A stretch of 63,747 bases of DNA, counting the filler, from Klebsormidium nitens (lineage: Eukaryota > Plantae > Klebsormidiophyceae): the NCBI GenBank assembly GCA_000708835.1. It is 5 parts of 5 records of this genome, joined end to end, with 100 filler letters (N's around TTAATTAATTAA, not from the genome) between each part and the next. Parts side by side here need not be neighbours in the genome. Positions count along the whole stretch, not along the records: positions 50,374 to 62,558 come from DF238101.1; 4 more parts are not named here. One strand, 5' to 3'. Of the stretch, positions 4,295-62,558 are shown piece after piece. The first letter of the stretch is position 1; each line of letters begins with the position of its first letter. The notes under the pieces were generated by a model. That model was not told the DNA's origin and searched no databases. It worked only from the letters and a program-made list of their open reading frames with translations. The translations under genes were made by a program, and so were the position numbers.

Positions 4295-6540
4295 GAACGG
4301 CCAAAGCCACCAACAAGGGGCACGTTCTCGGCACAGCTGGCTACTATCGGCGCTGTGTTCGGAACTACTCCAGCATCGCCGCCCCTCCGAACAGGCTACT
4401 GCAGAAGGACGTGCCATGGGGATGGACGGCCAAAGCTTAGCATGCCTTTGAGCCGCTCAAAGCCAAGCTGACCGAAGCTCCTATCTTGAGGAGACCCAAC
4501 TTCGCCCTGCCGTTCGAGCTCCACACTGACTGGAGTGCCAAAAGCCTAGGCGCCGTTCTTGCTCAGAGAGACGAGGAGAACACGGAGTTCGTAGTTGCAT
4601 ACGCCTCTCGGAGTAACAACCGGACTGAGCGCAACTACTCGAGCTACCAGGGACAGTGTCTTGCGGCTGTCTGGGGAGTCTAGATCTTCCGCGTGTACCT
4701 CTAGGGAAGACACTTCACCCTGATTACGGATCACAAGCCTCTAAAGTGGCTCATGACCAACATGCGACTCGGGGATGCACGCCCGCTGGGCTAACATCCT
4801 CCAGGAGTACGACTTCGAGATCGTGCACCGAAGCGGTCTCAAGAATTTGGATGCGGACGGGCTCTCGCGGAACCCTCTCCCATCAGATCACGACTTAACA
4901 GACGCCCGAATGGACCACGTTTCTGAACCTGAAGCTGGTGCCATTTCTGCTTGCCTGGCAAGATTGGTCAGCCCCACGGCTGACGAGGACTCAGTCGTTT
5001 CGAGCCATGCCCGCCGCGCTGCCCGTCGCACCGCCGCGTGACCAGCCAATCGACCCAGAGTTGCCAGTTGACCGCGATATCTGGAACGATGAGCTAGTAA
5101 TGACCTACGTGAGGCACGGCACCTATCCTGATGTTGCCACGGCTCTTGCAAAGGACCGCATCTGGCACCGTGCCTACTAAGGGCTACCACTTCCAGGAAG
5201 ACGTGCTTTGCAAGCGCCTCTCTTCTGGCGAAGTCAAGATTGTACCCAAACCAGAGCAGCGCGTGAACCTCATTCGCCGCGTGCACCTGGATGTGGGACA
5301 CTACGGCGTCAAGAAAACGTACTCCTTGCTCGAGCCCATATACTGGTGGGTCGGGATGTATGGAGACGTCCAGAAGGAGGTCAGCACTTGTGTGGTCTGC
5401 GACCGCGTTAAGGCCACCTTCGAGGTGAAGGACCCTGAACTAAAACCTCTGCCAATCATGGGCATGTTTTACCGTTGGGGGATCGATCTTTTCAAGATGC
5501 CCTTCCCCTCTACCGCTGGCAACCAGTACGTGATTGTCATGATCGAGCATTTTTCGAAGTGGATCGAAATTGCCGCAATTTCTGCAAAGACTGCAGAGAA
5601 CGTGAAAGCCGCGTTCATCAAGATCTTGGCACGCTACGGCGCGCCCGCAGAGGTCTTGACACACCAGGGAACGGAGTTCGAGGGCCTTTTTGCCGAACTC
5701 CTTCTTGCGGTGTACATCGACCACCGCATCACGTCCAGAGACCATGCCCAATCCAACGGCTTGGCCGAGAGGATCGTCCAGATGTTCGAGAAGGCACTGC
5801 GCAAATACTGCGTGCTGTACGACCACGACCACTGGGACGAATTCCTCCATTGGATTGCGATGGGGTACCGGTTCAGCCGCCACCACTCGCTGGGGGGATA
5901 CTCCCCCTACTACTTGCTCTACGGCCGCCACCCAATCGTGGGTGCAAGTATCAAGGACGTCGTTGATGAGCCCATCAACCTGGACTCACCCCTGCTCAGC
6001 GCAGATCCTGCGAGATCGCGCCCTGCTGTTCAAGGAGGCTATGCCCATGGCGTTCAACAACCTAGCCATAGCCCACCCGCGACACGCTGCGCTACGCGTA
6101 CACTCGCTCTGGCAACTTCAAGCCGAAGCTCAAGCGCTTCGAAGTCGGAGACCTGGTCTACCTGCGCCGCGAGTCCACCAACTCCATGGAGCCTGACACA
6201 GGCCGGATCATCCTCAGAGTCAAGCAGCTGCTCGGCACAGGCCGCTTGCTCTTGGAGGGCCGTGATCAGAAGACCATCAGAGAGCATGTTGAGAACTGTG
6301 CGCCTTGCCACCATCCCAACATCGACCTCTACCAGGATCCCGCTCTGGCAGACAACCAAGAGAAGGACCAGGCATGCGAGGTTTGCGGACTCGTTGATGT
6401 CACCCGGAGAACTGGTCCCATGCCGCTCTGCGACAACTGCGACTCCGGCTGGCACATGAAGTGCTTAACTTCATGAAGACACGTCCTAAGGGCGACTGGT
6501 TTTGCCCGAACTGTCCTCTCGCTGCGTCAAAAACGTAGGC
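4295..6540 (+). pseudogene. Ty3/Gypsy pol fragment: RT thumb/connection, RNase H, integrase, C-terminal PHD finger
   Basis: FLGTAGYYRRCVRNYSSIAAP..LLQKDVPWGW; LKAKLTEAPILRRPNFALPFELHTDWSAKSLGAVLAQ..VVAYASRSNN; H..VGHYGVKKTY..C..C; WGIDLF..VMIEHFSKW..QSNGLAER; CEVCG..LCDNCDSGWHMKCL..GDWFCPNC. Stops and frameshifts present. Confidence 0.93.
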
Positions 6541-6602: not shown

Positions 6603-7616
6603 TGGGGGGAGGGATCACGAATGATATGATATGCCGTATGAGTGACATGTAATCACGTATGTTTTTCGCTTTCGCCGTTCAATCAAGGCACTTCGACTGT
6701 GCACCGACATGATATCGCACCGACCCATGACCGCATGATAGCTGTCATGCCGTGTGCTGTCGTTGCCGTGAAGGCTCGGCTATAGGGCTTTATGCCCATG
6801 CTAGTTGCTAGATGCCGCCACTTGGCCGCCCATGCAAGTTATAGATCCCACTTGGGGCTCGCCAATCCCAGAGAGATCCCCGCATAGATTGCCGCATCTT
6901 AGTGCACAACCGCCGTCACTAACGGCCGGGGCATGCGCTTAGCGCCATCGCCACATGTGCGCAACGCAAGTACCGCGCTCGGTGCAAACAACCAGGCACT
7001 CATACGTTTGCCGTTCTTCCCCTACGGCACTTACCTTGGTTGCGTATTGTGCGCTGGGTACTCGGACCTGTACGCCGTACATCCGCACCCTATTTTTACC
7101 ACGTTCGTGCGACTCCGCAACGCATATTCCGCCGACCGAATCATATACGAGGATCGCCATCCTATTTTCGACCAAAGCGCCATCGACTCCGCCTTATTGT
7201 TTGCACCACTAGGGGTAGTTTGTACTTCGATTAGACTTTGAACACACTTATACATCGACGTAGACCCTTAGAGACTAGACTTTCGATCGTAGGCTAGGAT
7301 ATTCCGCCGTAGCCTATAAAACTTGCGAACAGACACTAATTCCCCAACTTAGTGCAAGTTGGGAATTGGACTTTCGACGTTCCGGTGATAGAGCAGCCCT
7401 ACGCTCTTGACACTGACCCGACTTAGCCATTATCTTCTTCACGCTTCCCTCGCTCCACTCGCCTCAGCCTGTGTCAAGTACTTTTGTAGGGATCACAGCT
7501 GATATGATATGCCGTATGAGTGACATGTATTCACGTATGTTTTTCGCTTTCGACGTTCAATCAAGGCACTTCGACTGTGCACCGACATGATATCGCACCC
7601 ACCCATGACCGCATGA
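6603..7616 (+). mobile_element. Polypurine tract and 3' LTR-like region of the PHD-Gypsy element, with a ~128-bp terminal direct repeat
   Basis: GGGGGGAGGGA lies just after the pol end. 6610-6738 is repeated almost exactly at 7488-7616. Confidence 0.65.
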
Positions 7617-15456: not shown

Positions 15457-17699
15457 CTCCATTTCCAACTTCCAACTCACTAAACCTTGTAAGCATTGTC
15501 AATGAGCCTTGGGGGTCCCAAGCATCGGCTTGGATTACTTGGAATGCCCTCGAGGCAAAACTTGGGGCGCTACATACGCGGGCATGCCTCACATCGCGCG
15601 CTTGCGCGGAATGCCCCTTTGTAGCATCACAGCCGCACCAGGAACCCTCAATTTCCACATTCGAGCTCACCAATCTTGCACGCATTGCGTACGATCCTCG
15701 AGTGACCCAAGAATTGGCTTGGATCGCTCGGAAATGCCCTCAAGGCAAAACTTGTGGCGCTACATATGCGCTCATGCCTCACACTGCGCTTTTGCGCAGA
15801 ATGCCCCTTGAGTCACATCACAATTGCACCTGAAACCCTCTATTTCAACATTTGAGGTCATAAAATCTTGCACGCATTGCATATGGGCCTCGAGGGGCCC
15901 ACGGATTGGCTTGAAGCGCTCGAAATGCATTTGAGGCAAAACTTGGGGTGCTACATATGCGCTCCTGCCTCACAGGGCGCCCTTGCGCAAAATGCCCCTT
16001 TGTCACATCACAGCCGCACCTGGCGCCCTTCATGTTCAATTTCTAAGCCACTAAACCTTGTATGCATTGCATATGGGCCTTGAGGGACCCAAGAAGGGGC
16101 TTGGATCGCTCGTAAAGCCCTCCAGGCTAAACTTAGGGCGCTACATATGCGGTCATGCCTCATACCGCGCGCTTGCGCAGAATGCCTATTTGTAGCATCA
16201 CAGTCGCACCAAGAACTTTCTATTTCCACATTCGAGCTTACTAAATCTTGCACGCATCGCATATGGGCCTCGAGGGACCCACGAGTTGGCTTGGATCGCT
16301 CGGAGTGCCCTCGAGGCAAACCTTGGGGCGCTTCATATGCGCTCTTGCCTCACAACGCGCGCTTGCGCAGAATGCCCCTTTGTGGCATCAAAGCGGCACT
16401 TGGCGCCCTCCATTTTCAACTTCCAATCCACCCTCAACCTTGTAAGCATTTTGAATGAGCCTTTGAGGACCCACGACTCGGCTTGGATCGCTTGGAATGC
16501 CCTCGAGGCAAAACTTGGGGCGCAACATATGCGGTCATGCCTCAACACCGCGCGCTTCTGCATGATGCTCCCTCATCGCATCAGAGCCGCACCTGGAACC
16601 GACTATTTCCACGTTCGAGCTTACTGATTCTTGCACGCATTGCATATTGGCCTCGAGGGACCTACGAATTAGCTTCGACCGCTCAGAATGCCCGCGACGC
16701 AAAACCTGGGCCGCTTCATATGCGCTCATGCCTCACACCGCTGCATCTGCGCATAATGCCCCTCGTCGCATCCGACGCAACCGCACTTGGTGCCCTCTAA
16801 TGCCAAATTCAAACGAGCTCACCGAACCTTGTACGCATTGCATATGAGGCTCGAGGGATCCACAAAGCAACTTGGATCGCTTGGAGCGCTCCGCACTACG
16901 GAACATCAAAAATCAACTTCAGAGAAACAATGATCTATTCCGAAGCTCGTCACACGATCCATGAGTGCTGCAGCGCCGCATGCAATTTAGGACGAGAAGG
17001 CTCTGACGGAGCTCAGCCTAGCAGCTTAGTGGGCTGCACATGCGCGACTCGCGATCCACAAGGGCGGCTGCCCGCGCAGCGTTTCAACTGCTGAGTGTCG
17101 TTTGGTTTTTAATTGGGCCCGTCATCAAATTGAAAGCGGAACCTTGCCGGCGATAAAGCCTACAGAATGCAAGCGTGCAAAAACACATGACCTCCACCGC
17201 CATCGCAAAAAGTACATGTTTATTTGCATGGCGCGACGGTGGTACACTGAACCAACGTACGCGCTTGATCTGCGCGAGCGTTGCAAGCATGGTTCTCCAT
17301 TCACATCAGCAACAATTGTAAGAACTTGCGCAGAAATGCGCTTTATCGGTATGTGACGGTGCCAGCTCTTTGTGCAATGATTTCACCTCTGCCAGAACGT
17401 ACGCGGCATGCTGAGGCTGAATTCAATTTCTATGTAATTACAAGCAATGGCGTCATGGCGGCCCCACATCCATTTGTGAGCACCTTTCCGGCCCAAGCGA
17501 CTTGCGCCGCGCGGCCTTTTAAGCCACGTCCACCAATTTCAATTTAGGTCATGATGGCGCTGGATGGGCCAGAGGCTTACAGCATTCAGCTAGAGCTTTG
17601 TAGCAGTATATGCTTTTGTGGTCAATCGCCCGCCGCTACCCTCATCGCCGTGGCATGATTTTTTTATCTAAGTGCGATTCATTGCATTGGTTCATGTCA

Positions 17700-21022: not shown

Positions 21023-22869
21023 TAGTGGAACGGGAGAGACCCGTAAGACTTATGGTGGTGGAAACCACTATTGTGATACATCNNNNNNNNNNNNNNNNNN
21101 NNNNNNNNNNNNNNNNNNNNNNNNNNTTAATTAATTAANNNNNNNNNNNNNNNNNNNNNNNNNNNNNNNNNNNNNNNNNNNNAGAGCCTCGAGCCCCAAC
21201 TATCGAACGCCTTGAGATTCACACCCAGTGTGCTGACTCTTTATTGCCAGAACATCAAGAATGGTCGCGGGGACACCGTCTGCGGAAGGTAAACCCAGTC
21301 CAGAAGTTGTGAAGCGGGATTGAGTTGAAATTCTGCTTACGTTAATTGCATCAGGATATTTTGCGAGTAACCTTTTGCAAATATGAAGCTGATTAGAAGT
21401 TGATCACGGAGCAAACCTGCCACTCTTTCAGTAGCAACCGGCAGGCTTCAGATCTGGCAGCGGTTGAGGGTGAAGCCTCAACGTTTTCCTATCATCGCCA
21501 AGTGCTCGAGCAGGATCGAGGCCGTTGCTGTTTTCAGACGATTTACAGGTTGATCCTTTCCTGAACTTAAAGGATACATTGAAGAAGGGGGTGTTTTTGC
21601 ATAGACGAGCATGCGGCAAGTCACAGTGCTTGAGCAATTGTGAAAACCAATACATTCCAAATTCAAGATCGGCTCCACGTGCGTCTGCACACCAGGATTT
21701 TAACAATCACTAGACAAGTCCGTCTCGCACTTGCTTCCAATCGCGGTCGTGTTTAGCGAGATTCCCGAACGTGCCAGATGCGGACACTCTGAGCCGCTGT
21801 CAAATGGTCTGTACATGGACGAGAAAAGGCGAGCACTCTTCACGACGCGCGCGCGGCCCAGAGAATCGGCATACTCTCCCAGCTTATCGCTTTTCCGCTT
21901 TGAAGGCTCCGCTCATCCCCAGTCCGCCAGGGACTCTCTCTGTTCCGTTCCGTCTGCCTTTGGGCTTCCTTTGTTTGGTTCAGGTTCCTTCCGACGTCGT
22001 TGCTTTCTTTCGCGCTTTTCAGACGGCCCTAGCTTGTTCCGCCGCTCCAGGTATCAGGTACAATTTTTCCGTACACCTTGCTTCGTCTGCACCTCCGTTC
22101 CGCTCTCGCCCACCGGGCCGGATCATTCCGTTCTGCAGGCGAATACTTGACCTGCCGTGGACGCGCGCCAAATCGCGCAAGCAACGGCTTGAGACAACAT
22201 CGACGCTGTACCATGCGCACAAATTATCAAATACATAGTGTCTGTGAACAACGTTTCGACATATTGCAAAGCATCTAGCTAGATCCCGAGACCCAAATCC
22301 ACAACCAGAATGCCATGCTCTGATGCAGAGGTCGAAGGCTCAGACTTCATGCATGATCCACCCCTGCAATGAGGCGCACCTCACTTAATGTCGGTCGTCG
22401 TAGCCATATGTACAGCACAGTCGTTATAAGGACAACGAAGTCAAGTTATAAACTAAGGTAAGCAGGGCGGGTGCAATTGACCAAGTGTTTTAAAAAGCCT
22501 AGGATACACCACCCTCTTTTTATCTGGCCCTAATTCGAACGAAAGATGGCCCTGACGACTGATTCCCGTTCTGACCTCAAGCACTTGGCATAACCATCTT
22601 GGACATCAAAGAATGGTTGTGGTGTTTGACAGTCAATGGCCTGATCACCTCAGTACTTCTGATCAAAATATAAATATTGGCAAACGCCCATATGCATCAG
22701 TGTTGGAAAAAGCGTTGGGGCGCCGACACAACCAAACCTTGCACCCTCCCCGCGCTCTAAAAGCAATCGAAGTTTCTACAATTGTCTGGGAATTCAGCAA
22801 TGTATCGGAGACAACGCTCGGCAGACTGTCTCCTGAGTTCCAAAGGAATCCTTCCGCCACAGCCTCAAC

Positions 22870-50200: not shown

Positions 50201-50973
50201 CGACCAGAGTTGGAAGAAGCCGGAAAGAGGGTTCACGTCCATGCAAGCGAAGCGCTGCAACATCAGGCTGAATNNNNNNNNNNNNNNNNNNNNNNNNNNN
50301 NNNNNNNNNNNNNNNNNTTAATTAATTAANNNNNNNNNNNNNNNNNNNNNNNNNNNNNNNNNNNNNNNNNNNNCTGCTTCCACAAGCTACCTAGGGTGCC
50401 TACCGGGTGTATCGATATCGACAGAAACCGTCGGAAATTTGTTCGCGGTATGTTACGTCAATGTCGCGACGCGGCTATTTGAGTGACACCATTTGCCGGC
50501 AATTTGATACGTCGCGCGTGACGGCTGGTATCAAAACCGGCGATCCAATCGGTAACGATTGTGTCACAAACTGTAACGCACTTGGTGGAATGCTTCGATT
50601 CGTTACAGTCGGGTGAAGTGTATCGATCCCAGATCTATCGAATCCATTTCGAAACCTTAAAAGCATGGCTTCAAGCGAATGTGCGGTTTCGAATCGAATA
50701 GCCCAGTCTAGCTCGCTTTTGCAAGTTTTGGCGGGCTTCAGCTTCGAAATCAGTGAAGCCCGGAGCGGAGCATGAGCTAAAGCCTAAAAGACAGCTTGCT
50801 GTCCAGAACGTTAGAAGGGCGCCAAGCCTTCAGCTGCCAATCCCTTTTGAAGAGATTCGGAGCTGCAGGGCTTCCGCAACAATTGCTGAGCCTGGGTCCT
50901 TCCGTTGTGCAAAACGAATCCTGGTGAAGTCTGCCTTTTTACCAGTCCACCCTGACTTTCTGCTCTAGAAGCA

Positions 50974-53203
50974 ATGATCCAGCCAGGTTGGGCAGCGCCA
51001 ATGCAGAATCAGCGAGCTTCTCTCAGCACTGGTGGCTTCTCTAGCCAATCAGCGTTTCAAACGCCATCAAGACAGCAGACCTCCGTTTCAGAAGCAAACG
51101 TGGAGCAGGGGCCTGAGACGACGTCTCCATTGAAAAAGCGCACAGACATCTCGCCAAGGCACTACTTTGAGACGCTGCTTGCCAGCCCTATGTTCAAGAG
51201 AGCTAACCTGGACTCTGCTGCAAAAGAGGATCATGGGATCAAACAGTGGTTGTTGCATAACATTGTGTGGTTCTTCATTGTGAAGAAAGGCTTGGCAGAT
51301 TTGACCAATCTGTATGCGGGAAAGCAGGATGGCATCATCATCAACAAGCTCTTCAAGCCCAAAGAAGCGACTGGTAGGTTTACATCAGGATGCTTTTGAA
51401 AGCTCAAGTGCAAACATTGCACCCTATGCAAAAGCCTTCTCTGAGCCTTTATTCTCTTACGCCTAGCTTGGGCAGATGCTTATCTGTGCTTGTCTGGACC
51501 ACTGAGTACTCAGCTAGTAGGTGAAATTGAAAGCAGGATTTAGAGTAAGTGCTTGAAGAAGTGACGGTGTTGAGTGCTATCCTGAAACCTGTGTGTCTTT
51601 TGATGCATTGTGCAGACGTTGAACCCCAGCAGACAGGCGTGCGCAGCGCCAATGGTCTGGTCGTAGACGCCCCTACTCTGGAAAGACTGGCCAATGCATC
51701 AAGCAGTGGTCGCTCGATCCGCCAGCAGCACTCTCATATCGCTCAGCAGGTGCACGGAATCCTTGACAAGAAGCGGGCTAAGTCGGCGCAGCTGGCAAAC
51801 ACCTTCAGGGATGGTGATCCTGGAGACAAAGGACTGCGCAGGAGGTTTCTGGTTTTGAACGAGAGATTTCTCAGTCCCGACGAGCGGCAATTCAGTTTTG
51901 CAAAGGAGTGGGCCACAGTGCATGATCGCGGAGTTGACCCAGAAGCCAAAAGGCTTTTCGCTGTATTTGAAACTGAGAATATTGAGGAGTTCAACTTCCT
52001 CGTAGGGCCTATGCTTGAAGGAGAGTACGGCGTCGCCCCCTGGAGTGTAAGTCCTCTAGACCATCCTGTAATGTCTCTGGTTAGTGGAATGTCCCTTGAA
52101 GCAAGCTCAGCAGTGCTCATTAGTGCTCAGCAGTGCAGTGAGTTATGCAACAATCTTACATGATGCTATACTCACCAGTTCAATTCTCTTTTTGTGATCA
52201 CATGTATCAAGTGCAGAATCAGGTTGACCAGTGTTGGGCACAGCAAAGAGTGTTATCCTGCCTGAGCTGCATCAACCTGCGCTTGTGTGTCACTAACCGG
52301 AGTGACAGTCTTCTTACTCTTGACTGCCCCCCCTTCAATTGACGCGCAACATATCTGGTTTATTCGTCTTGCAGACTCAGATCAAGGTGCTGCCCCAAAC
52401 CCCTGCCTCACACAACTTCTCTTCAGAAGAAGAGGCTGCCGCACCCGCAGCCACTGAGCTTCCGTTCTGCACGTTCGACCTCGAGGATCGCGTGGAGGTA
52501 CGTGTCTCCAGGCCATTCTGCCCTTTTGAGACCAAGAAGGAGGTGACTCTTCAAGAGTGCGACGAGCTGGAGGACGCCATCCCGCCAAAGAATCTGTTGA
52601 TTCTGGGTGGGAAGATGCCGGAGTACCTTGACTACGACTTTGACAAATTTGAACAGGGGTAAGCGTGCGATTCTACTTCATGGGTGTGATCATTCAAAAC
52701 TTTTCCCCTCCTAACCCAGGCTAGCTGGCCTGATCTTATATATGCTGCAAGCAGGCAACTTGGCTTTGAGCAAAAACCACAAGAAAGTTGCACGTACCCA
52801 AGTGGACTGTAGAGTTGACTCTAACAAGGCATCTTGAATATGTGTCAGAAGCTTTACATACGGCTTCATTGGACTGCCTTCTTTTGAGTGCCATTTGATC
52901 GTCAAGCAGCTTACTAGCTTACAGTGCTCAGATTACGTTCTCTTTGACTCATCCTTCTCATGATTAACGAGCGTTTCTTTATCCTGCAGACTCCAGCACA
53001 AGCGGAAGTACGACGAGATATCCACCACAAACTTCCCCGTCAGTGACTGGCGCAATGAAATCTCGTTGCCCTACTCAATCGACAGGAGTGAGAGTAAGCG
53101 GTCCATCCAGGCAGGAGCCTTTGTCATCTCGTTCAAGAAACGCCCGCTTGCTGAGAAGAGAAAGCTGATTTTGAACGCGGATGATGACTCGGACAATGAT
53201 TGA
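50974..53203 (+). CDS. Intact 5-exon gene, 457 aa, unknown N-terminus, probable C-terminal HSP20/alpha-crystallin-like domain
   Basis: Exons 50974-51373, 51476-51520, 51616-52046, 52375-52658, 52990-53203. All introns GT-AG, phases 1,1,0,2 consistent, total 1374 nt with no internal stop. C-terminus FDLEDRVEVRVSRP..LLILGG..WRNEISLPYSIDRSESKRSIQAGAFVISFKKR. The true start could lie upstream. Confidence 0.8.
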
Positions 53204-53949
53204 GTGCTTCTGAAGTTGCTCGTAAATTGCCATCTACACTTACAAATTCATTGCGCCATGTGATCTTGAATAGATGCAGTGTGACCAAGTGTCTTCTATG
53301 TACAACTTAGTCAGCTGTTTTCAAAGCGAGCAGCATCTAACAATTGGCTTGCTAATTCGTTAACTGCGTGCTTGCCTTTAGTTCATATATTAAGCAAACG
53401 CTATGATTTGAAAACAACCATATGATTGTTAACATGCATTGCATGTGGATCTCCGATTCAATAAAGGCACATAGCTCCTCATTGTGCATTGAATGCTATC
53501 TAGTTGACTAAACATTCGAACATGTTGCTCATAAGAACATGCCACATGATGGCCATGCGAAGAGCACGATACTAATTGTGCGAGCAGAATGAAATCAAGA
53601 GACGTGCAATCAGTTCGACTTTGCAATCATATGCAATCAGTTCGACTTTGCAATAATCACAATCATTGAAGCTTTTCTTGGCAAAGTTCGGTGAATCATA
53701 ACGCGCAAGGATCTGCCGTCTGTCCAAACTTTACACTTCCTAGCCAACAATAGGTTACATAACACACTACTGTCATATATACAAGTATGAACGAGTTTCC
53801 TAGAGACACCTTGTAGTACTGTGACAGAGGCCTAGACAGGCACTCGGGCAAAAGCTTCGAAACATTGGCTCAGGTACGGGTCCCCGTTGCCACTAGATGC
53901 ATCCTTGGTGATCACTTGCTCTCCCTCAGCAGCAGAGTGATTTTGGGCG

Positions 53950-56900
53950 GACGCAGAGCTAGTGGTGGGGTGCATGTGGCGGCGTCCATGCAAGATTCCC
54001 CTTGCCTTTGAATCGAAGTCCTACCCGAGCACCTGCCTAGAGCTCTCCATCGCAGACTACGAGATACCTCTTTTCTTTGTTCTTGGATCCTCCTCCACAC
54101 CGAGACCACGGCTCTTCTTCACAGCCTGCCAAGCCTTAGTGATTGAGTTCACAAGGATATCTTTATTCACCTTATTCTGCATCCTCCGGATCTTCGGCTC
54201 CAGAACGCTCCAAATTTCCGTGGCTTGCTTGGCCGACTCTTTCGAAAATGGTTTGCCGAACAGATCTGCAGTAAGAAAAGCACGGTCAGGTTATGTCATC
54301 TTCCTCTCTCGCTCAAATTCGGAGCCTATTACAAGTCTGAATGGAACCACCTGTCCGAATTGAAGCCGTTCTAAACCGGACTTGTCGGAACCAATCACCT
54401 TTCAGACGAAACCAGTCGCTAAATCAGCCTACTGCCTCGACCGAGCCTGTGCAACAGGCTTTAGCCAGCCTGCACATTCGAAACGCATGTATTCGAAGCA
54501 CCAAGAAATACCCCGTCCAAATCTGCACTACCCTAGTGTCCGGACAGCGACGCAAAATCGGACGCAGGCACGTGCGGCCCCGCAGAATCTCGACTTCCAA
54601 GACTGCAAGACGCCAACAAAACAAACAGCCTCGAAATTCAGAAGAGCATCGAGAACGCCCCCTCATCCCCTCAGATTTTGCACGGCCCTAGATTGGGGAC
54701 AACACCATGCCACAGATGTCGAGCGCACCACTTCGCAACACTGCAAACCCAACATACCGTCCACATTTGCAGGACGTTAGACTCCGGACAGCCTTGCAAA
54801 CTCGGACGCAGCAGCCACGTGACGCAAAGTTTGACTCGTCCACCGTTCGAATGGCAGCCCGGAATCCTCGGACAGAATAAAGCGCTGAACCGTGAACCAC
54901 TTCATTCGAACCTGGCAGCATAACCTTAGGCGACCACGTACATCTGGAGAGAGCTGAGTGCAGTAAAACAATGGAAAATCGAACCACTTTGAAGGCGACT
55001 CTCTTGCGCCACAGTGAGTCTCTTTATCAAGATGCTCACCTAGTTCCGCTTGCCGGATGCCGTTCTTGTAATACCTCGCAAGCTGGGCTTGAACGAAAAT
55101 ATCAATCACTTCGGACGAGTCGGGGATGCTCGATTTCGCCCTCTGAACAGCGCCTGTAAGAGGAACTGAACGGTAGCTCAGTGGCCCGACTCATGTAAGT
55201 TCAGAAACCACCAACAAAAGCACTCGAAAAGAACCTCTCCCAAGAGGGAGAAGCCACCCTCCCAAAGCGCTGGCGCTCGCCCGAAAGGAAACACAAGGAA
55301 CGACAAACATTTTAACAAAGGCGCAAACGAAACCGCGAACAAACACTGTGAAGTTCTGCCCCAGACCAGGGACGTTCTTTAGTATTTCAACGTTGCTCAG
55401 ATTCCAACCAGACAAATGATTAACGGTCTCTTCGAAAAAGGCAAGAGCAGTCACGTAACGCAGACCACTGTTTGCACTGAAAAGATGCTAACCCGGACGA
55501 AGGGACTGCCGCGCGCACGGAACTTGAAAAGCTGCGGTCCGTTTTCAGCTTCCATATACAAACGCAGAGAATCTTACCTGCGTATGAGAAAGTGCAGCCG
55601 GCCTCTACCGTGGCATCAACTCACACGATTTGGACCCCGACGGCCAGGTTCGCCCCCGACCCTTGAGGAATCAGGGCCTCGATTTTTGAGTGGGGGCTAA
55701 GCAGGCTAACCCCGGTACAAGGCTTTCCCCCGATGGTCACTTGTATCCGAGCGTTCACTCCGGTCCCAAAGTGGCGTCCACTGACAGCGAAGTGCCCACC
55801 CGGCGCACCTGACTTTGTACACGCCAGGACGTGCGGTCGGGAATAGGGAATTGAGGTTTCAGGGTTGGTAAGGCTAGACAACCCGTCAAGGGACACTTGA
55901 ACGAGTGCGCGGCCCCCGGCGCCGGGAGGAACTCTCACGAGCAAGGACGTGTGCTCAGCGACCAGGCGAGCGGAGGCTGGGATACCTCCTGCGAGCACAA
56001 AATAGAGAAGGTTGCGTTATTTCCTTTCACGCAACTGCGAAAAGAAGTGCCAGCAATCAGGTACGACAAAAGCCTTCATGCACAAGGCTCCAAAACTTCA
56101 GGTATATAGAAAGCGCAAGTAATAGCGTCAAGTGCTTGTCAGATGAGGGAACGACGCACTTCACTGCCTGCTTGCCCATTTAACTCAATCTTGAAGCATT
56201 CCGTGAGCTTCGGGTTCTGCAGAAAGACGGGTCAGGCTCCAAGTGCAGAAAGTGCAGAAAGATGGGTCAGAATTCAAGTCACGAAGCTTAATCACACTCA
56301 CCTACGGTCACCCTCAGCAGATCTGCAGTATTGTGAGTGCCGAAATTCAGCCCGTTGATCGTGAAACTCTCGTTTCGAGTCCAGGTTGGGAAATCTGGAG
56401 CCCCGTCTATGTGAAGCTCGGTGACGACGGGGGCTGCACAAGCAGAAGCATTAAATCCTTCACTATTTCTTTGTCCTTTCAAGCTGAGCCAACGGGCTGT
56501 TGCTCTCCTGCGTCGCTCTCCTGCAAACTGGAACAGAGAAGAAAGAAAAGCGAGCGCTTACAAGGAAAACAGGTGTGTTGGTGGCATGATCTCGATGGGG
56601 CCAGACTGAGACGCTTTTCACCATCTAAACACGGCTCTTCCTCTCAAAACCGCCCGCCTGCGCGCCAGTCCATAGGAAGATGATCAAAGAGAAAAGAAGC
56701 AACGGCGTACCTGCATAGGAGAACGGTGCCTTTGACAAGCCGGAGCGGTTGCGGAGGGTGAGATGTTTCTCGGACCCGGATCCCGGCCCCACATCATCCA
56801 CGGCCACACGGTCGGCCTGGGCGCTCACGACAGTGCACTCGACCCCGTCTGAAGCCCGAACGGACACCTCTCCCACGCCGAGGCTGGCGCCATGGAGGGT

Positions 56901-57536
56901 CAACCTCCCTCCGCTAGTGGGAAGCTCCGTAGGAACCACCCGCTCGATGGTGGGACCTGGATTGAAAACCAGTTTTCAGAAAATGTCCTGCTGAAAACCA
57001 GGGCGAAACCTTCACTCTCACGGAGCAAGCACCTACTTCTGGTGACTCAAAACTACTCGAAAAAGCTCGCGCAATCAAGAAGAAGCAGGCTGACCGTCAC
57101 CGAAAGATCTCCTTGTCTCCTTGAGAAGCGTTGGTCTATGCAGATGCGTCAAATACAAAGAAGACCGTCAACGAAATCGAGACCAGAATTCGACCACAGC
57201 TCAAGCAATATGAGACATTCGCACCTTTGTAAGCGAATCCTGGCAGCACCAAAGGCGGCAACTTGATGTCAAACACCACAGGAGCGCGCGGACTGCCGTA
57301 GCTGATGTCGACAACCGGGGTGATGGCAACCGTGAGGCGAGACCCGGAACCAGGAGGGACGGTGCAGATCAGCACCGAGTCGGACTCGACTCGGACAGAC
57401 GGGCATAGCTTGCCGTCGACGCTGGCCTCAAAGTAGAGCCCCGGAACCGGTGTCACAAAGCCTTTTCCCGTAATCGTCAGAGTCGTGCCCCCTTCCGGAG
57501 GCGCGAGAGCAGGTCGGAAGCGGCTCATTGAGAAGC
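53950..57536 (-). CDS. Multi-exon IPT/TIG (Ig-like) repeat coding region, about four repeats, with one in-frame stop
   Basis: Exons 57536-57225, 56956-56711, 56433-56302, 55988-55578, then from 55429 onward, joined by phase-1 GT-AG introns. Motifs PPEGGTTLTITGKGF..VDGKLC..LICTVPPGSG, PTSGGRLTLHGASLG, FTINGLNFG..VTVGG..VRVPPGAGG, VSGRHFG..VTIGGKPC..IPQGSG. In-frame TGA at 55621-55623. Exons below ~55000 are tentative. Confidence 0.8.
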
Positions 57537-57792
57537 CTTGAAAGAAAATCCATTCGAAGTCAGCACACAAACCTCTCTTCCTCTCAGAAAAGCACCGTTG
57601 GAGACATAGAGAGAGACTCATCAGGGCTGCAAATGATGCCACCACAGTTTCTTTGCAAAGTCAGGTCCACCTCCTCCACAAGTACCCCAAACCCGAAATG
57701 ACCACACTCACGAGTAACCAGATTATGCCCGCGCCCTATGCACGACCGTGCCTTTTAGCGACAACTCTCATAGCCAGAAACAAACAACCTAC

Positions 57793-60190
57793 CTTTCTCA
57801 AGTGCCTCACGCGACAGCCTGGCTGCAGCAAGCAACTGGCGGAGACGGTACCGGAGGCGATATCGCTTGATGACGGCGACGCTCCGCCGCCTCAAGTAGT
57901 CACCACAGGGTTGTAGATCGATCCCCCGGACCTTGAACGCTGAGCAGTACGCAGTGTGGTTTCCTTCGGCGTCTCTGCAGGAACCCCGCTCCTCCGCAAA
58001 CTGCTCACACCAACTAATCGGAGAGATGTGGTCAGCAGGAAGCGGGGCCTCCTGAAGGTGGAAATTCGGATCTCCACCTTCACGAAAGCCATCCCCGCTC
58101 AAAAGGAAGAAGATCGGCTCCGCGAAGCATTGGCAAACCTCGGAGGGGACTTTGCAGGAGCACGTATCAAGGCATTTGCAATCGCACTTTGTCTTGCAAT
58201 CTTGGCATGTACAGAAGCAGCGACACGCGCAATCTGTGGCTCTCTTCACAAGACGAGGGAAATCTAGTTCTCTCCTTGCAGCATCACTCTCATACACGAA
58301 CAAAAACTTCGAAGCGAGCCCCTTCTGATGGATTGTGCGAAGCATCTGATTGAAGAGTCTGCGCATCACACTCGTCAAACCGAAGACACAAGCGAAGATG
58401 GCCAAATGGGGAATGACCGTGGGTCGAAACGAAGAGTCAAACTTTTTCCTGCCTACAAGATTCTGCTTGCTACTGTTGATGAAGTCACGAAGGACAATGT
58501 CATGTACAAGCTCGGAAGTGCGGGTAGTGTCAATGACGTTCAGATTCTTATCACTTCGCTTAGCGTCAGCTTTGACTTGCTGGTGAGCTGACTCGCCATC
58601 CTCTTCAGACACAACGGGGAGCGGAAGATCATGATTGCTGTAGAAATCAGGAATGTGACTTATGTACAGGTGAGGATGCAACGCACGCATTTTGGGTTTT
58701 CGCAACTTCTTCTCTTGTGCCCGCACCGAAGCATCCAGGTAGGCAGTCATTGAGAAAGTCAAATTGTTGACGACGTACAAAGTACAACGCAGCCGGTCAG
58801 TGGGAGGGGAAGATCTATATATAATACAAAATGAGATCTCTAAAGTTAGGAGCGGCATCATGCCGCGGCGATCAAGCAGGTTAGCAAAAAGCTCTTCGCG
58901 GCGATTGACCAAGCGACGAATCTTTGTTACATTGTGGGCAAGTCCAATGTGACTGCCTTCTTTTTCAGCATCTTTGACGGTGATATCGGTGTTTATCAAG
59001 GCCTTATATCTATGGACCAATTCCTGGGCTCCCCCCTTTCCATCCAAAACCTCTTCAGAGTCTTCCTCTTCACCAGCCATGCGCCCAATCTCTGATCTCT
59101 GAACAGTGCCTAGAACAGCCTTTCCCATAGTTCCCAAAGAGTGCATGATTACAGGGACTGGTTCTGGACATTTCAACCTGTTGGCAGTGCAAGCCTGACT
59201 ACCCCTAAACTCCATGGGGAGCCCGACTACATGGAAGCACAGCCTTTTGATAAGAGTCAACAACTTGGCCAACCGCGACTTAAAAATTGGATTGGTGTGA
59301 CGATTGCATGCATCCAACCAAGACTGCCCCTTTTCCCTCCAACCAAACCCAGAATTTTCATCTCCAAGAATTTGGACCAACTCTTCTTTTGTTACAGCAC
59401 CCGACAAAGCTTTCTGCAGCTCAGGAAGCTTTGTCAACAAAGACGTTCCTACTTCTAGAGCTGCTTTTGCATCATCCAGAACATCTCGTGCGGCTGATGC
59501 CGACTTGCAGGCTTGCAGAGAGTCAAACGAAACAGACATAGAAAGACCAGAAAGCAGCTCCAACTGGTCTTCAAAACTGAGTTCAAGCAAGAAGTTGCCG
59601 ACTCTTGATGGAAGAGCATCATTATTTTCAACAAAAGTAGTCAAGGCAGACGTGACATTGGGAAGTGAATCTTCTGGGCAGGTGGACTCGACTCCTTGCG
59701 GGACAACGGCTGTCAAGAAACTCAAAAACTCCTGGGAAAGAATGGCGGATGCATCTGGATTATCTGAAAGAAAAGCACTGGCTGCATCGCGAAGCTTGGG
59801 AAGCTCAAGTTGCGCCACAGTTGTTATTTTCGAAATGAGCTCAATGCGTGCTGTGAGAATCTCTACGCTTTCGACCTTTGGCAGTGACTTACAAAAATCC
59901 TCACTGCAATTAGCCAAAGCGATAATGGAAGCAATATGATTGAGAAAAGTTTTCCAACAGTCTTTGTGGAGCTCAGACGAGCGGGCCTGCCCATCGTACG
60001 CAGCAACATCAAGCAACGCATATTCTACTGTACAACACGGGCACAAGATGTCAATCCCTAGATAACCATCCAACCCTTTTGCATCACCGGTCACAAAATC
60101 CACCTCTGCTCTTAACTGGGTCTCTTGTCCATCAGGATGTGCAAAACGCAAACCCACAGTGCGAATGTATCTCTCAAAAATCAGCCTCAT
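57793..60190 (-). CDS. C-terminal part of a RAG1/Transib-like DDE transposase with a Cys-rich tail
   Basis: FVTGDAKGLDGYLG (second D, ~60083), LCPCC (CxxC), IGLAHN, PHLYISH (Hx4H), VVSEEDGESAHQ (E, ~58592), then CACRCFCTCQDCKTKCDCKCLDTCSC. ORF open for 811 codons. Confidence 0.75.
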
Positions 60191-60201
60191 GTCACCTACA
60201 G

Positions 60202-62115
60202 TCAGCCTGTTTGAAAGCCCTTCTCAGTTTCCAAGCGCAACCTTTCCTCATTGGTCAAGAAGACCTCAGCCCCAAAAGCTTTGGTCTCCGAGCCAAAAGC
60301 TTCAAAGACCCGCTCAAACTTCGTCACTCTGCCCACAATGGCATCGCTGATCAATCGGACGCGGTTGAAAGCTGCAGAATGCCCAGCAACTGGCGTAGCA
60401 TCATAGAACTCAACAGCCGAAGCATGCACTGGGCCAGCAGTTGGTTGTAACCGGCCCATGGCGGCCATATCTCCAAGCACTTTCTCACCCCAGAGCCAGG
60501 GCGCTGAAAACCTTCCACCTGGTGACTTCTTGCGCACCCGCTGGACAAAAAGAATCTGCTCAACAAGCGGAGGCACAACAAAAGGCTGTCCTGATAAAGC
60601 TAGGGCCCTTTCCACATCCACATAATCAATGCTCTCAAAATTGATCTCGCTCTCAGCAAACTCTACTATCCAGGATACAGATTCTTGAGATTGACCATTC
60701 AACGCCCTAGCATTTTTTATCTCATTGTCCTTGTGTACTTTGGAAGCGGGCAGACCCTTGGCAACAAACCACGCTTGGATGTCACCTTTGACAACAGAAG
60801 GGTGAAGATCAAGCAACCGAACACATCTTTCTGCAAGTACTCTCTGGCCGCGTGCGCAGAGGTACTCTGGAGGAGAAACATGATCAATGAAGAAGCCTCG
60901 AACCAGGGTTGACAATTCTCCAGCTTGCTTTTGGATGTCACTAACAATGGGCAGAAAGTTTGGGGCGGTTTCACCCTGACTGTACCGCTTCTTGACTCGC
61001 CGATTGACCACATAGACAATGCGCAAGGGCTGACCGTGCAAGTCAACCAACCTGATGCGCACAGCAGCAGCATCTGCTGGCGTATCAAACACAAGCAAAA
61101 ATGAATTGCCCCTACCATGACTTCCGACGGCTTTGACGAAAACAACAGCTCTTGGCTTTGGCAACAGGTTTTCTTCCAAGTAGTTCTCAAGGATTTCCGA
61201 CCACACAGTGATATCTCGACTGATCTCCCGCTGATTCTCAGGATTGTTCATGAAAGAGCGAGACCAGCGAAAGACACCAGCTGATGTGCCAACCAATGAT
61301 GCAGAAAGCACTCGTGAGCAGCAACTTGGTTCAACTTTGACCAACTCGCCAGTCCGCGGGTCAGCATACTGAAAGGGCTGCCGGGCTTCATACATGACCA
61401 TCAAGCGAAGTTGGTCGTAAACATTTAAAGACTTGCAGGTCGACCAGGCTATGTACACGGCCATCTTCTGCCATCCAGCAGCTACTTCCTCACGCATGTC
61501 TTTCCTGCCTAAAGCATATGCGGCTTTCACCAACAGAGTCACACGTTTCTCAGCATCCTTCTCAGAGTCAATATCCCGCATCACCTGCCGCGTCTCATCA
61601 TTCAAATTGTAAGCATCATAATCATCTTCAGCACCCAAGTCAAGAAACTCATCCTCATCGCATGTTCCGGCTGCTGGCTTGTCATCCTCCATGAAGAGGA
61701 GGGGCTCGTCACCAGCATCTAGAGAACTAGGTGGGCTCACAGATGTCGTGAAAAGGTTGGGCAGCTCATCATCTAAAGCATCCAAGAATTCATCCTGCAT
61801 CTCTGCAGGCTGCGTCTGCTCACAGTGGTCGTTTGCTTTAGGCAAATCAGCATTATCGTCTCCAACAGCATTATCACCTTCAACATGATCTTGAGAACCC
61901 GCCAGCAAGGGACCACACTGCCAGCACCCAGTCACACTTGGCGCAAACCACAGATCACAAACAGCATCAGGTTCAACCATGGAGTCCCTTGAAATTTGTT
62001 GGACAATGTTGCCTTTACATTTCTTGGCAGCTGAAACTCGAGCTAGAGCACGCCACAATGAGTCAGGCGTCTGATACTTGTGTGGTATGTCACCAGCACC
62101 CAGCACAAAATGCAT
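60202..62115 (-). CDS. N-terminal part of the same transposase gene: acidic linker, two RRM-like domains, first catalytic D
   Basis: GRGNSFLLVFDTPADAAAVRIRLVDLHGQPLRIVYV and CVRLLDLHPSVVKGDIQAWF..WIVEFA..VERALALSGQPF..ILFVQR are RRM-like. VEFYDATP (D, ~60400)..FGSETKAF. Needs a -1 shift or a short intron near 60200 to join the next ORF. Confidence 0.65.
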   Translation of the reverse strand: MHFVLGAGDIPHKYQTPDSLWRALARVSAAKKCKGNIVQQISRDSMVEPDAVCDLWFAPSVTGCWQCGPLLAGSQDHVEGDNAVGDDNADLPKANDHCEQTQPAEMQDEFLDALDDELPNLFTTSVSPPSSLDAGDEPLLFMEDDKPAAGTCDEDEFLDLGAEDDYDAYNLNDETRQVMRDIDSEKDAEKRVTLLVKAAYALGRKDMREEVAAGWQKMAVYIAWSTCKSLNVYDQLRLMVMYEARQPFQYADPRTGELVKVEPSCCSRVLSASLVGTSAGVFRWSRSFMNNPENQREISRDITVWSEILENYLEENLLPKPRAVVFVKAVGSHGRGNSFLLVFDTPADAAAVRIRLVDLHGQPLRIVYVVNRRVKKRYSQGETAPNFLPIVSDIQKQAGELSTLVRGFFIDHVSPPEYLCARGQRVLAERCVRLLDLHPSVVKGDIQAWFVAKGLPASKVHKDNEIKNARALNGQSQESVSWIVEFAESEINFESIDYVDVERALALSGQPFVVPPLVEQILFVQRVRKKSPGGRFSAPWLWGEKVLGDMAAMGRLQPTAGPVHASAVEFYDATPVAGHSAAFNRVRLISDAIVGRVTKFERVFEAFGSETKAFGAEVFLTNEERLRLETEKGFQTG

Positions 62116-62537
62116 ATCGATGCAAAAAGCAGCAAAAGCAAGCCTCTTCTCGCGGATTGTACTACGTCCTATTTCGTTCCTCTAGAAACTGCCGCCCATA
62201 GTAACACACCAAACAAACTCGACATCATAGCACGAAGGAAAAGTAACCAGAAAAATGGCTAGAGTTCCAACAACCCTCATCTCAGCAAGCGTCACCGGGG
62301 TTTCTGGGTACAGAAAACCATGAAAGTAGGCCTTTCGCGTAAAAGCAGGCTCCATGACCGTTGAGGTTCCGCTCAAGCAGAAAGTAATGACCACCAAAAG
62401 CGAGCACAAGAGAATAGTAGACAGCCTCATGTGGGCACCCGATAGCATGGAGGATTCTCACCCGAGTCTTCTGCTCCTCCTCACTCCCCTGTCCCCCAGC
62501 AATAGGAGCTAGATCCTCGCCCAAGTCTCCTGCTCCT

Positions 62538-62558
62538 TGTGACGGTTGGACAGGGTTC
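62538..62558 (+). mobile_element. End of an LTR, truncated by a gap
   Basis: TGTGACGGTTGGACAGGGTTC; first 14 nt identical to 12504-12517. Confidence 0.6.

Follow-up and report, generated by a model that had tools for sequence, protein, structure and literature searches.

The window analyzed here is a stretch of 63,747 nucleotides, filler included, from the Klebsormidium nitens assembly GCA_000708835.1. The piece at positions 50374-62558, from record DF238101.1, is very probably a nearly complete, defective copy of a two-gene DNA transposon of ~13 kb, which carries a RAG1/Transib-type DDE transposase and comes from a Klebsormidium-like green alga. This Klebsormidium two-gene transposon was previously undescribed. 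The transposase gene (gene A) lies on the minus strand, and a second gene (gene B) runs toward it on the plus strand. An earlier note on this DNA had proposed a RAG1-like cut-and-paste transposase in a probable algal genome. Four independent lines of evidence, namely the catalytic motifs, fold ranks, ESM language-model features, and terminal inverted repeats (TIRs) beginning CAC with target duplications, all agreed with a cut-and-paste enzyme of the RAG1/Transib type, related to the CACTA/Mirage/Chapaev (CMC) transposases. The algal origin was borne out as well. Relatives with a species name came only from Klebsormidium and Cymbomonas. The full extent of gene A upstream and downstream, gene B, the TIRs and the breakage of the copy all lay beyond that account.

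Complete elements were recovered in four copies (L001, L009, L006 and L008), where the TIRs enclosed gene A and a convergent gene. The ends found were as follows.
50381..50402, plus strand, reading inward: TIR of the window copy on the side of gene B, starting CACAAGCTACCTAGGGTG, 7 nt from the left edge of the piece.
L001, 5914-5935 and 19488-19509: TIRs of 22 nt, perfect (22/22); element of 13,596 bp.
L009, 7187-7221 and 19891-19925: TIRs of 35 nt, 83% identical; element of 12,739 bp.
L006 (K. nitens, locus of protein P0008), 6874-6912 and 21669-21707: TIRs of 39 nt, 95% identical; element of 14,834 bp.
L008 (a distant relative), 4775-4812 and 15624-15661: TIRs of 38 nt, 84% identical; element of 10,887 bp.
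At the window end, positions 50381-50393 matched the 13-mer exactly and lay as far from gene B as expected, and a further copy, L011, had a TIR start at one end in the same place relative to gene B. The TIRs started with CACAAGCTACCTA in L001 and L009, CACGAGGTATCTACGGTG in L006 and CACAAC in L008, and homology between copies started exactly at the CAC of the TIR. Direct duplications of 2 bp (TG, CC, AA and CT) flanked all four complete copies; four such matches have a chance of about (1/16)^4. No similarity was detected between the flanks outside the TIRs in any pair compared.

In the window copy the core of gene A was split over two open reading frames (ORFs) that adjoin and differ in frame: ORF1 (62115-60202, minus strand, 637 aa) and ORF2 (60190-57755, minus strand, 811 aa). 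Every motif named in the earlier note was present where it had been placed.
60408-60391, minus strand: candidate first catalytic Asp (D1), FYDATP, D572 of ORF1.
60094-60074, minus strand: candidate second catalytic Asp (D2), VTGDAKG, D36 of ORF2.
60046-60032, minus strand: CxxC zinc half-site, LCPCC, C50 and C53 of ORF2.
60094-60032, minus strand: block of D2 and CxxC, kept in all members covering it.
58678-58655, minus strand: His motif HPHLYISH, H505, H507 and H512 of ORF2.
58609-58583, minus strand: candidate catalytic Glu motif SEEDGESAH, E530 and E533 of ORF2.
Among the homologous sequences covering each site, D1 was kept in 8/8 (K. nitens P0008 and even the distant L008 among them), D2 in 7/7 and the CxxC in 9/9. 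H-x-H-x4-[H/E/C] and E-x-x-E were kept in the members spanning them; H505 and H507 were invariant in the family, with H, E or C in the third position. This conservation reached relatives at about 24-30% identity. D1, D2, the CxxC and the His and Glu motifs, conserved as they are across the family, are no chance strings. The zinc site was split, with C50-x-x-C53 after D2 and H507-x4-H512 before E533. In P0042, a protein of L009, D1, D2 and the CxxC lay in a single uninterrupted frame, with 108 aa between D1 and D2 and 14 aa between D2 and the CxxC. The spacing from D2 to the Glu, put at about 500 aa in the earlier note, measured 497 aa.

The joining of the two ORFs into one gene, which the earlier note had supposed, also stood. 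ORF1 and ORF2 are one gene, because the tail of ORF1 and ORF2 had a common frame in L001, L002, L003 and L009, and DNA alignment against L001, L002 and L003 placed a 7-nt gap at 60223/60224 in the window only. An identical ORF1/ORF2 junction was found in Logan contigs from three runs of one sample. Upstream of ORF1, an ORF of 88 aa (62448-62185) was homologous to the N-termini of L001, L005 and L002, and it was severed from ORF1 by an in-frame stop. Two lesions were therefore listed.
62184-62182, minus strand: lesion 1, an in-frame TAG where the relatives L001, L005 and L002 have Cys, Phe or Tyr.
60223..60224, minus strand: lesion 2, a 7-nt deletion between D1 and D2 that shifts the frames of ORF1 and ORF2 apart.
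With these two disabling lesions the window copy is defective and unable to make the enzyme.

Two other accounts of the interruptions were tried and rejected. A programmed -1 frameshift at the ORF1/ORF2 junction was dropped because there was no slippery heptamer and the relatives had 7 extra bases. A variant genetic code or short introns did not explain the in-frame stops: TAA, TAG and TGA all occurred, at sites that differed per copy; the stops aligned to ordinary residues, often Arg, in ungapped conserved blocks; and the frameshifts of L001 were limited to gene A. At the N-terminus of gene A (62448-62380), a hydrophobic, signal-peptide-like stretch was observed, also present in L005, L001 and L002. 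A signal-like N-terminus kept in four lineages is odd for a nuclear DNA enzyme. Met followed the hydrophobic stretch in 3/4 lineages, and the true start of gene A may be downstream. A faint APOBEC1 match at the N-terminus of ORF1 was absent from the L005 orthologue.

ORF1 and ORF2 were folded with AlphaFold as two separate pieces. Structures were searched with Foldseek against the PDB, with VIA-align on the Foldseek candidates, and with a Foldseek-independent VIA search of 48,161 solved chains. The ORF2 model had a predicted local distance difference test score (pLDDT) of 74. In the Foldseek-independent search, the top six chains for this model were all of the RAG family: amphioxus RAG1-like BbRAGL (6b40_E, Z 9.1, model residues 329-568), HzTransib (6pqn_A, Z 7.8, model residues 338-593) and four RAG1 entries (Z 7.6-7.1). 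The comparison with RAG1 and HzTransib that the earlier note had proposed thus put RAG-family chains first, at Z 9.1-7.1. When VIA-align was run on the Foldseek candidates, the top 14 rows were all RAG1 or HzTransib (Z 10.1-5.9, RAG1 best at 10.1), and unrelated chains stayed at Z <=5.5. The highest-probability rows of Foldseek itself were RAG1 (0.66) and HzTransib (0.60); no E-value <=0.001 was obtained for the ORF2 model against the PDB. In the alignment with 5zdz_C, model residues 343-533 were laid on RAG1 788-962, and E533 was paired with residue 962, the catalytic Glu of RAG1. Other chains placed E533 within one residue of 962. The VIA ranges started at model residues 47-50 against RAG1 722-734, the region of the CxxC zinc half-site, and pLDDT was low there.

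By structure ranks and residue mapping, ORF2 was found to contain, after an insert, two parts folded as in RAG1: a helical domain of the ZnH2 type and the helix that bears the Glu.
59206-58412, minus strand: RAG1/Transib-like helical (ZnH2-type) domain, which includes HPHLYISH and SEEDGESAH and is the most conserved part.
59983-59207, minus strand: lineage-specific helical insert (ORF2 aa ~70-328, ~260 aa), confidently helical in the model.
The RAG1 structural alignments jumped across the insert, which was the least conserved stretch (proportion of nonsynonymous differences, pN, 0.35-0.46), and the long spacing between D2 and the Glu is due to it. ESM features placed ORF2 in RAG1_ZnH2, RNase_H and ZnC2 clusters at 0.91. 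For P0042 the RAG1 RNase H/ZnC2 clusters scored 0.95 with 176 shared features, and Transposase_21 (CACTA, 0.92) and Plavaka (0.90) were ranked below them.

The two upstream segments described as RRM-like in the earlier note were modelled as RRM or U2AF homology motif (UHM) folds, with Z 8.3-9.5.
61326-61006, minus strand: RRM-fold domain 1 (ORF1 aa 264-370), pLDDT 66-86.
60837-60526, minus strand: RRM-fold domain 2 (ORF1 aa 427-530), pLDDT about 70-88.
The ORF1 model was poor overall (pLDDT 45) and good in these two segments. Domain 1 matched the UHM of U2AF35 (1jmt_A) with Z 8.3 and a root-mean-square deviation (rmsd) of 3.1 over 90 aligned residues. For domain 2 the top 50 of the 48,161 chains were all RRMs (Z 8.1-9.5), and single-domain RRM matches had an rmsd of about 2-3 A over 73-90 residues. 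Tandem-RRM chains spanned ORF1 258-534, covering both segments. As in known RRM/UHM domains, the segments matched the beta-alpha-beta-beta-alpha-beta fold over whole domains and had RNP1- and RNP2-like strands (VRLLDL, SWIVEF); they differed in that the first copy was modelled without a clear helix 1. Pfam RRM_1 had no match in ORF1 at E up to 1, and the RRM assignment is a predicted one, of fold only. Co-occurrence with the core, which the earlier note had wished to see checked, held even in L008, the most distant relative, where both RRM folds lay upstream of the core; the RRM folds therefore belong to the family. Protein and single-stranded DNA are also among the possible ligands of RRM-type folds.

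Gene A did not end where the earlier note had closed it. That boundary, 57793, coincides exactly with the end of an exon, the GT donor following at 57792, and gene A is predicted to splice on into IPT/TIG repeats in the same polypeptide.
62448..54057, minus strand: gene A, the full transposase gene, ~2000 aa if the two lesions are read through.
62448-57793, minus strand: exon 1, followed by six TIG-bearing exons.
57792-57537, minus strand: intron 1, GT..AG, 256 nt, across which ORF2 continues in phase into the first exon with TIG.
57536-57214, 56957-56760, 56437-56300, 56007-55570, 55367-55041 and 54266-54057, minus strand: the six TIG and C-terminal-tail exons (approximate, from the map of P0014).
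54059-54057, minus strand: stop codon of gene A.
The donor of intron 1 reads GAGAAAG/GTAGGT and the acceptor TTCTTTCAAG/GC at 57537/57536. The K. nitens protein P0014 (GAQ93011.1), which holds four TIG stretches, mapped as a spliced model over 58102-54069, across intron 1 and the six exons. Pfam TIG (PF01833) matched window ORFs of the downstream exons with E 2e-8 and 1.5e-7. In the Cymbomonas proteins P0024 and P0038, a C-terminal part like that of ORF2 was fused to TIG domains within one model each. Two further features lay between the core and intron 1.
58231-58124, minus strand: Cys-rich cluster (ORF2 aa 654-689), by direct reading, with 17 Cys in 36 residues.
57874-57830, minus strand: IQ-like basic helix VIKRYRLRYRLRQLL, with weak Pfam IQ matches.
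The Cys-rich cluster, 3' of the core, was of the CxC type, and its Cys columns were invariant among close relatives. K. nitens P0008 held a similar cluster. The IQ matches came from four family members (best E 0.012), and the ORF2 model had a long helix at 762-798, in the IQ-like region.

Gene B was found between gene A and the TIR of the window copy.
50974..53203, plus strand: gene B, ~4 exons, tail to tail (convergent) with gene A.
50974-51399, 51549-52163, 52339-52662 and, last, ~52985-53203, plus strand: ORFs of the gene B exons.
53201-53203, plus strand: TGA stop of gene B.
Gene B was kept in L001, L009 and L011 at 36-69% aa identity, always within the TIRs, and was partly present in L007. 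The ratio of pN to the proportion of synonymous differences (pS) was 0.23-0.30. Only two homologues of gene B were found, both metagenomic. There was no significant Pfam or PDB match and no recognizable domain.

When relatives were sought with a word-indexed search, three close ORF2 relatives and one ORF1 relative were found (contigs L001-L005, later L009). L001 was colinear with the whole window piece. A profile hidden Markov model (HMM) search of 1.84 billion representatives retrieved only 35 relatives. Sources were looked up for 20 of these: seven had a species name, all K. nitens or Cymbomonas tetramitiformis and none annotated as a CMC protein, and the remainder were metagenome or Logan proteins. 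Between copies pS was saturated (0.65-0.85; 0.81 in gene A), pN was 0.19 overall and 0.075 in the core, and both values in gene A matched those of gene B; purifying selection between copies appears to be strong. Stops or frameshifts private to the copy were present in each one examined. Of 12 in-frame stops, five fell at Arg codons (four TGA, one TAA), which fits CpG decay. Transposon families usually show this combination of purifying selection and private lesions. Several different copies were present within single metagenome samples.

L007 (K. nitens DF238197.1, 3685-9527) was a 5'-truncated, frameshifted copy of the same subfamily, 74-79% identical to the window at the nt level. Its annotation is that of the IPT/TIG protein GAQ93011.1, and the place expected for the transposase core is taken by a DUF7081 gene, which is unrelated. 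At L006:8001-17717 (K. nitens DF236987.1) the annotation splits gene A into GAQ79805.1 and a 419-aa TIG protein, both 'hypothetical', and treats the D2/CxxC exon, which has an in-frame stop 8 aa after the CxxC, as an intron. At L001:7500-15620 gene A had at least 5 frameshifts and one TGA, whereas no such lesion was detected in gene B of that element. In the source sample, another contig, of 1573 nt, matched window 60458-60553 at about 85% identity and similar depth, so the same genome has at least one further diverged copy. Run X5, with the same species label, differed from window 57700-62200 only by C>T and G>A, in 233 places, and therefore looks like bisulfite-treated DNA; conversion was patchy in its contigs. 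A metagenome scan with an 18-mer of the TIR gave 8 matches, which were set aside as chance because similarity ended at the 18-mer, and a metagenome protein-pattern scan found nothing. Short inverted-repeat structures near the left end of the element, or just outside it, in L002 (4843-5671) and L009 (4000-4596) may be other small mobile elements. The arms in L002 are 26 nt long, separated by 777 nt and 96% complementary; the structure in L009 is a 257-nt hairpin, 97% complementary.

Several results weigh against a RAG1/Transib-type transposon. Only one TIR lay within the window piece, and the second end would be beyond 62558, by an expected ~1-1.5 kb. The Pfam transposase and RAG1 models (PF12940, PF26100-PF26105) had no match at E up to 5 in 41 family members, and PDB sequence searches with a single sequence and with the family profile matched no chain. 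Z scores of 7-10 are within the range that helical proteins reach by chance; what makes the case is that all RAG-family representatives came out on top and that the residues could be mapped. The stretch from D1 to D2 was modelled at pLDDT <50 in both pieces, because the gene was folded in two. Gene B had no similarity by tblastn or HMM to the convergent ORFs of the distant L006 and L008. None of the RNA runs listed contained the sequence. All copies examined were disabled, and the search for intact copies called for in the earlier note yielded none among them.

Gene A was compared with the RAG1 group. RAG1, RAG1L (amphioxus ProtoRAG) and Transib have the same order D...D-CxxC...H..H-E as gene A, and their helical domain was the best structural match, among the 48,161 chains, for the one before the gene A Glu. 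The 108 aa between D1 and D2 in P0042 equal the spacing of D600 and D708 in mouse RAG1, and the E-x-x-E-S motif resembles the surroundings of RAG1 E962. The termini likewise begin with CAC, as in RAG1L and Transib elements. Transib proper makes a 5-bp target duplication, whereas that of this element was 2 bp, and 5-mers around the four complete copies were unmatched. Gene A further differed from RAG1 and Transib in having no detectable sequence similarity to them, in the ~260-aa helical insert, which doubles the D2-E distance, and in its two RRM folds upstream and Cys-rich cluster and IPT/TIG repeats downstream. RAG1L and RAG2L of ProtoRAG are convergent, like genes A and B (PMC7204232); gene B, however, had no recognizable kelch or RAG2 feature. 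Reports of Transib are mostly from animals, and a survey found none in fungi (PMC5751038), whereas this element is in a green alga, and no paper linking Transib with Klebsormidium was found in a literature search.

The CMCT clade (EnSpm/CACTA, Mirage, Chapaev, Plavaka, ESTA and Lanisha) is described as having CA(C)..(G)TG termini and duplications of 2-5 bp, with 2 bp in PlavakaA, C(2)C and H..H motifs throughout, and in ESTA a remote RAG1 similarity by HHpred (PMC12730594). Termini of the form 5'-CA..TG-3' with duplications in this range were found here (TIRs CACAAG.., CACGAG.. and CACAAC.. in L001, L009, L006 and L008). A duplication of 2 bp suits the wider CACTA/Mirage/Chapaev/Transib clade but not Transib in the strict sense. 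Like CMC elements, the Klebsormidium element is large and has more than one gene; it differed from them in the variable second and third His positions of gene A (H-x-H-x4-[H/E/C]), in the RRM and TIG modules and in the convergent second gene. Lanisha (GenBank MT647524) is a superfamily proposed from the moss Ceratodon, a streptophyte (PMC8245031). On these comparisons, the element probably represents a new lineage or variant in the CACTA/Mirage/Chapaev/Transib clade.

It is unlikely that the element is simply a named CACTA/Mirage-type CMC element or Lanisha, with a RAG1 resemblance that reflects general likeness within the clade. The CAC termini, the 2-bp duplication and the C(2)C and H..H motifs are indeed clade-wide, Transposase_21 and Plavaka were among the ESM features, the streptophyte origin of Lanisha is compatible, and the best ESM Atlas shape match was a Basidiomycota fragment (TM score 0.75). 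No CMC structure was among the matches, in which case RAG1 and Transib would be the nearest solved structures anyway. Against this, Pfam Transposase_21, Plavaka and KDZ had no match to the family at E up to 5, none of the seven species-named relatives among the 35 was annotated as CMC, RAG1 clusters stood above CMC clusters in both ESM searches, and an RRM-TIG architecture with a convergent second gene was not described for CMC or Lanisha lineages in the literature found.

Quite improbable, in our view, is a host gene domesticated from a RAG1/Transib-like transposase, no longer mobile and kept in synteny at one place in Klebsormidium-like algae, with recent pseudogenisation in the window genome. 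Gene B was a shared downstream neighbor in the window, L001, L007 and L009, gene A matched this neighbor in pN and pS under strong purifying selection, and sequencing depth equaled that of other contigs. However, both genes lay inside the TIRs and the flanks were unrelated in every pair, so the shared 'synteny' is the element itself. Independent lesions in all copies examined, over several genomes, are expected of dead transposons, unlike a conserved host gene, and single metagenome samples held several different copies; the host gene was dropped on the enclosing inverted repeats and the unrelated flanks. Coincidence, by which a lineage-specific multidomain protein that is no nuclease acquired DDE-like motifs and a helical similarity, could draw on the missing transposase sequence matches, the moderate Z scores, the D1-D2 pLDDT <50, the signal-like N-terminus and TIG repeats more typical of surface proteins, and it is most improbable: three independent signals converge on RAG1/Transib, the candidate catalytic and zinc residues are conserved throughout the family, and in the four complete elements the gene lies between inverted repeats that begin with CAC and are accompanied by target duplications.

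As a RAG1/Transib-type transposase, gene A would read, in order, a conserved N-terminus, an acidic linker, two RRM folds, the DDE core with its helical insert, the Cys-rich cluster, the IQ-like helix, the intron and four or more IPT/TIG domains. The DDE core, with D572 of ORF1 and D36, C50-x-x-C53, H507-x4-H512 and E533 of ORF2, would work as in RAG1, Transib and CACTA-type elements: it would attach to the CAC ends and nick them, and the element would move by cut and paste. An accessory role, in binding DNA, RNA or a partner, would fall to the RRM, Cys-rich and TIG modules and to gene B. Catalysis, the chemistry of hairpins and what the RRM folds, the TIG repeats and gene B do are what we infer by analogy, and RNA-targeted transposition, which the earlier note had raised, is speculation.

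Vertebrate V(D)J recombination uses RAG1, whose ancestors were Transib-type transposases. Deeper relatives of Transib are poorly sampled and, outside the CACTA group, come almost all from animals and fungi. A green-algal element that combines a RAG1-like helical/zinc core, the D-D spacing of RAG1, CAC termini, two convergent genes, a 2-bp duplication and a ~2000-aa transposase with RRM and IPT/TIG modules widens the taxonomic and architectural range of the RAG1/Transib enzyme class, and it is a test case for the recruitment of accessory domains and a second protein to a DDE core. For Klebsormidium, the K. nitens proteins GAQ79805.1 and GAQ93011.1 ('hypothetical protein') are fragments of elements of this kind and should count as transposon genes. 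We suggest, tentatively and with some doubt, that the family may be a superfamily-level green-algal lineage, spanning the streptophyte Klebsormidium and the prasinophyte Cymbomonas, with a transposase structurally nearer to RAG1/RAG1L/Transib than any other described outside animals, a convergent layout between CAC-ended repeats like that of RAG1L and RAG2L, and recruited RRM and IPT/TIG modules. If so, transposition could be linked through these modules to RNA or to a partner, be it chromatin or a protein, and the element would serve as an outgroup for reconstructing the origin of the RAG/Transib machinery.

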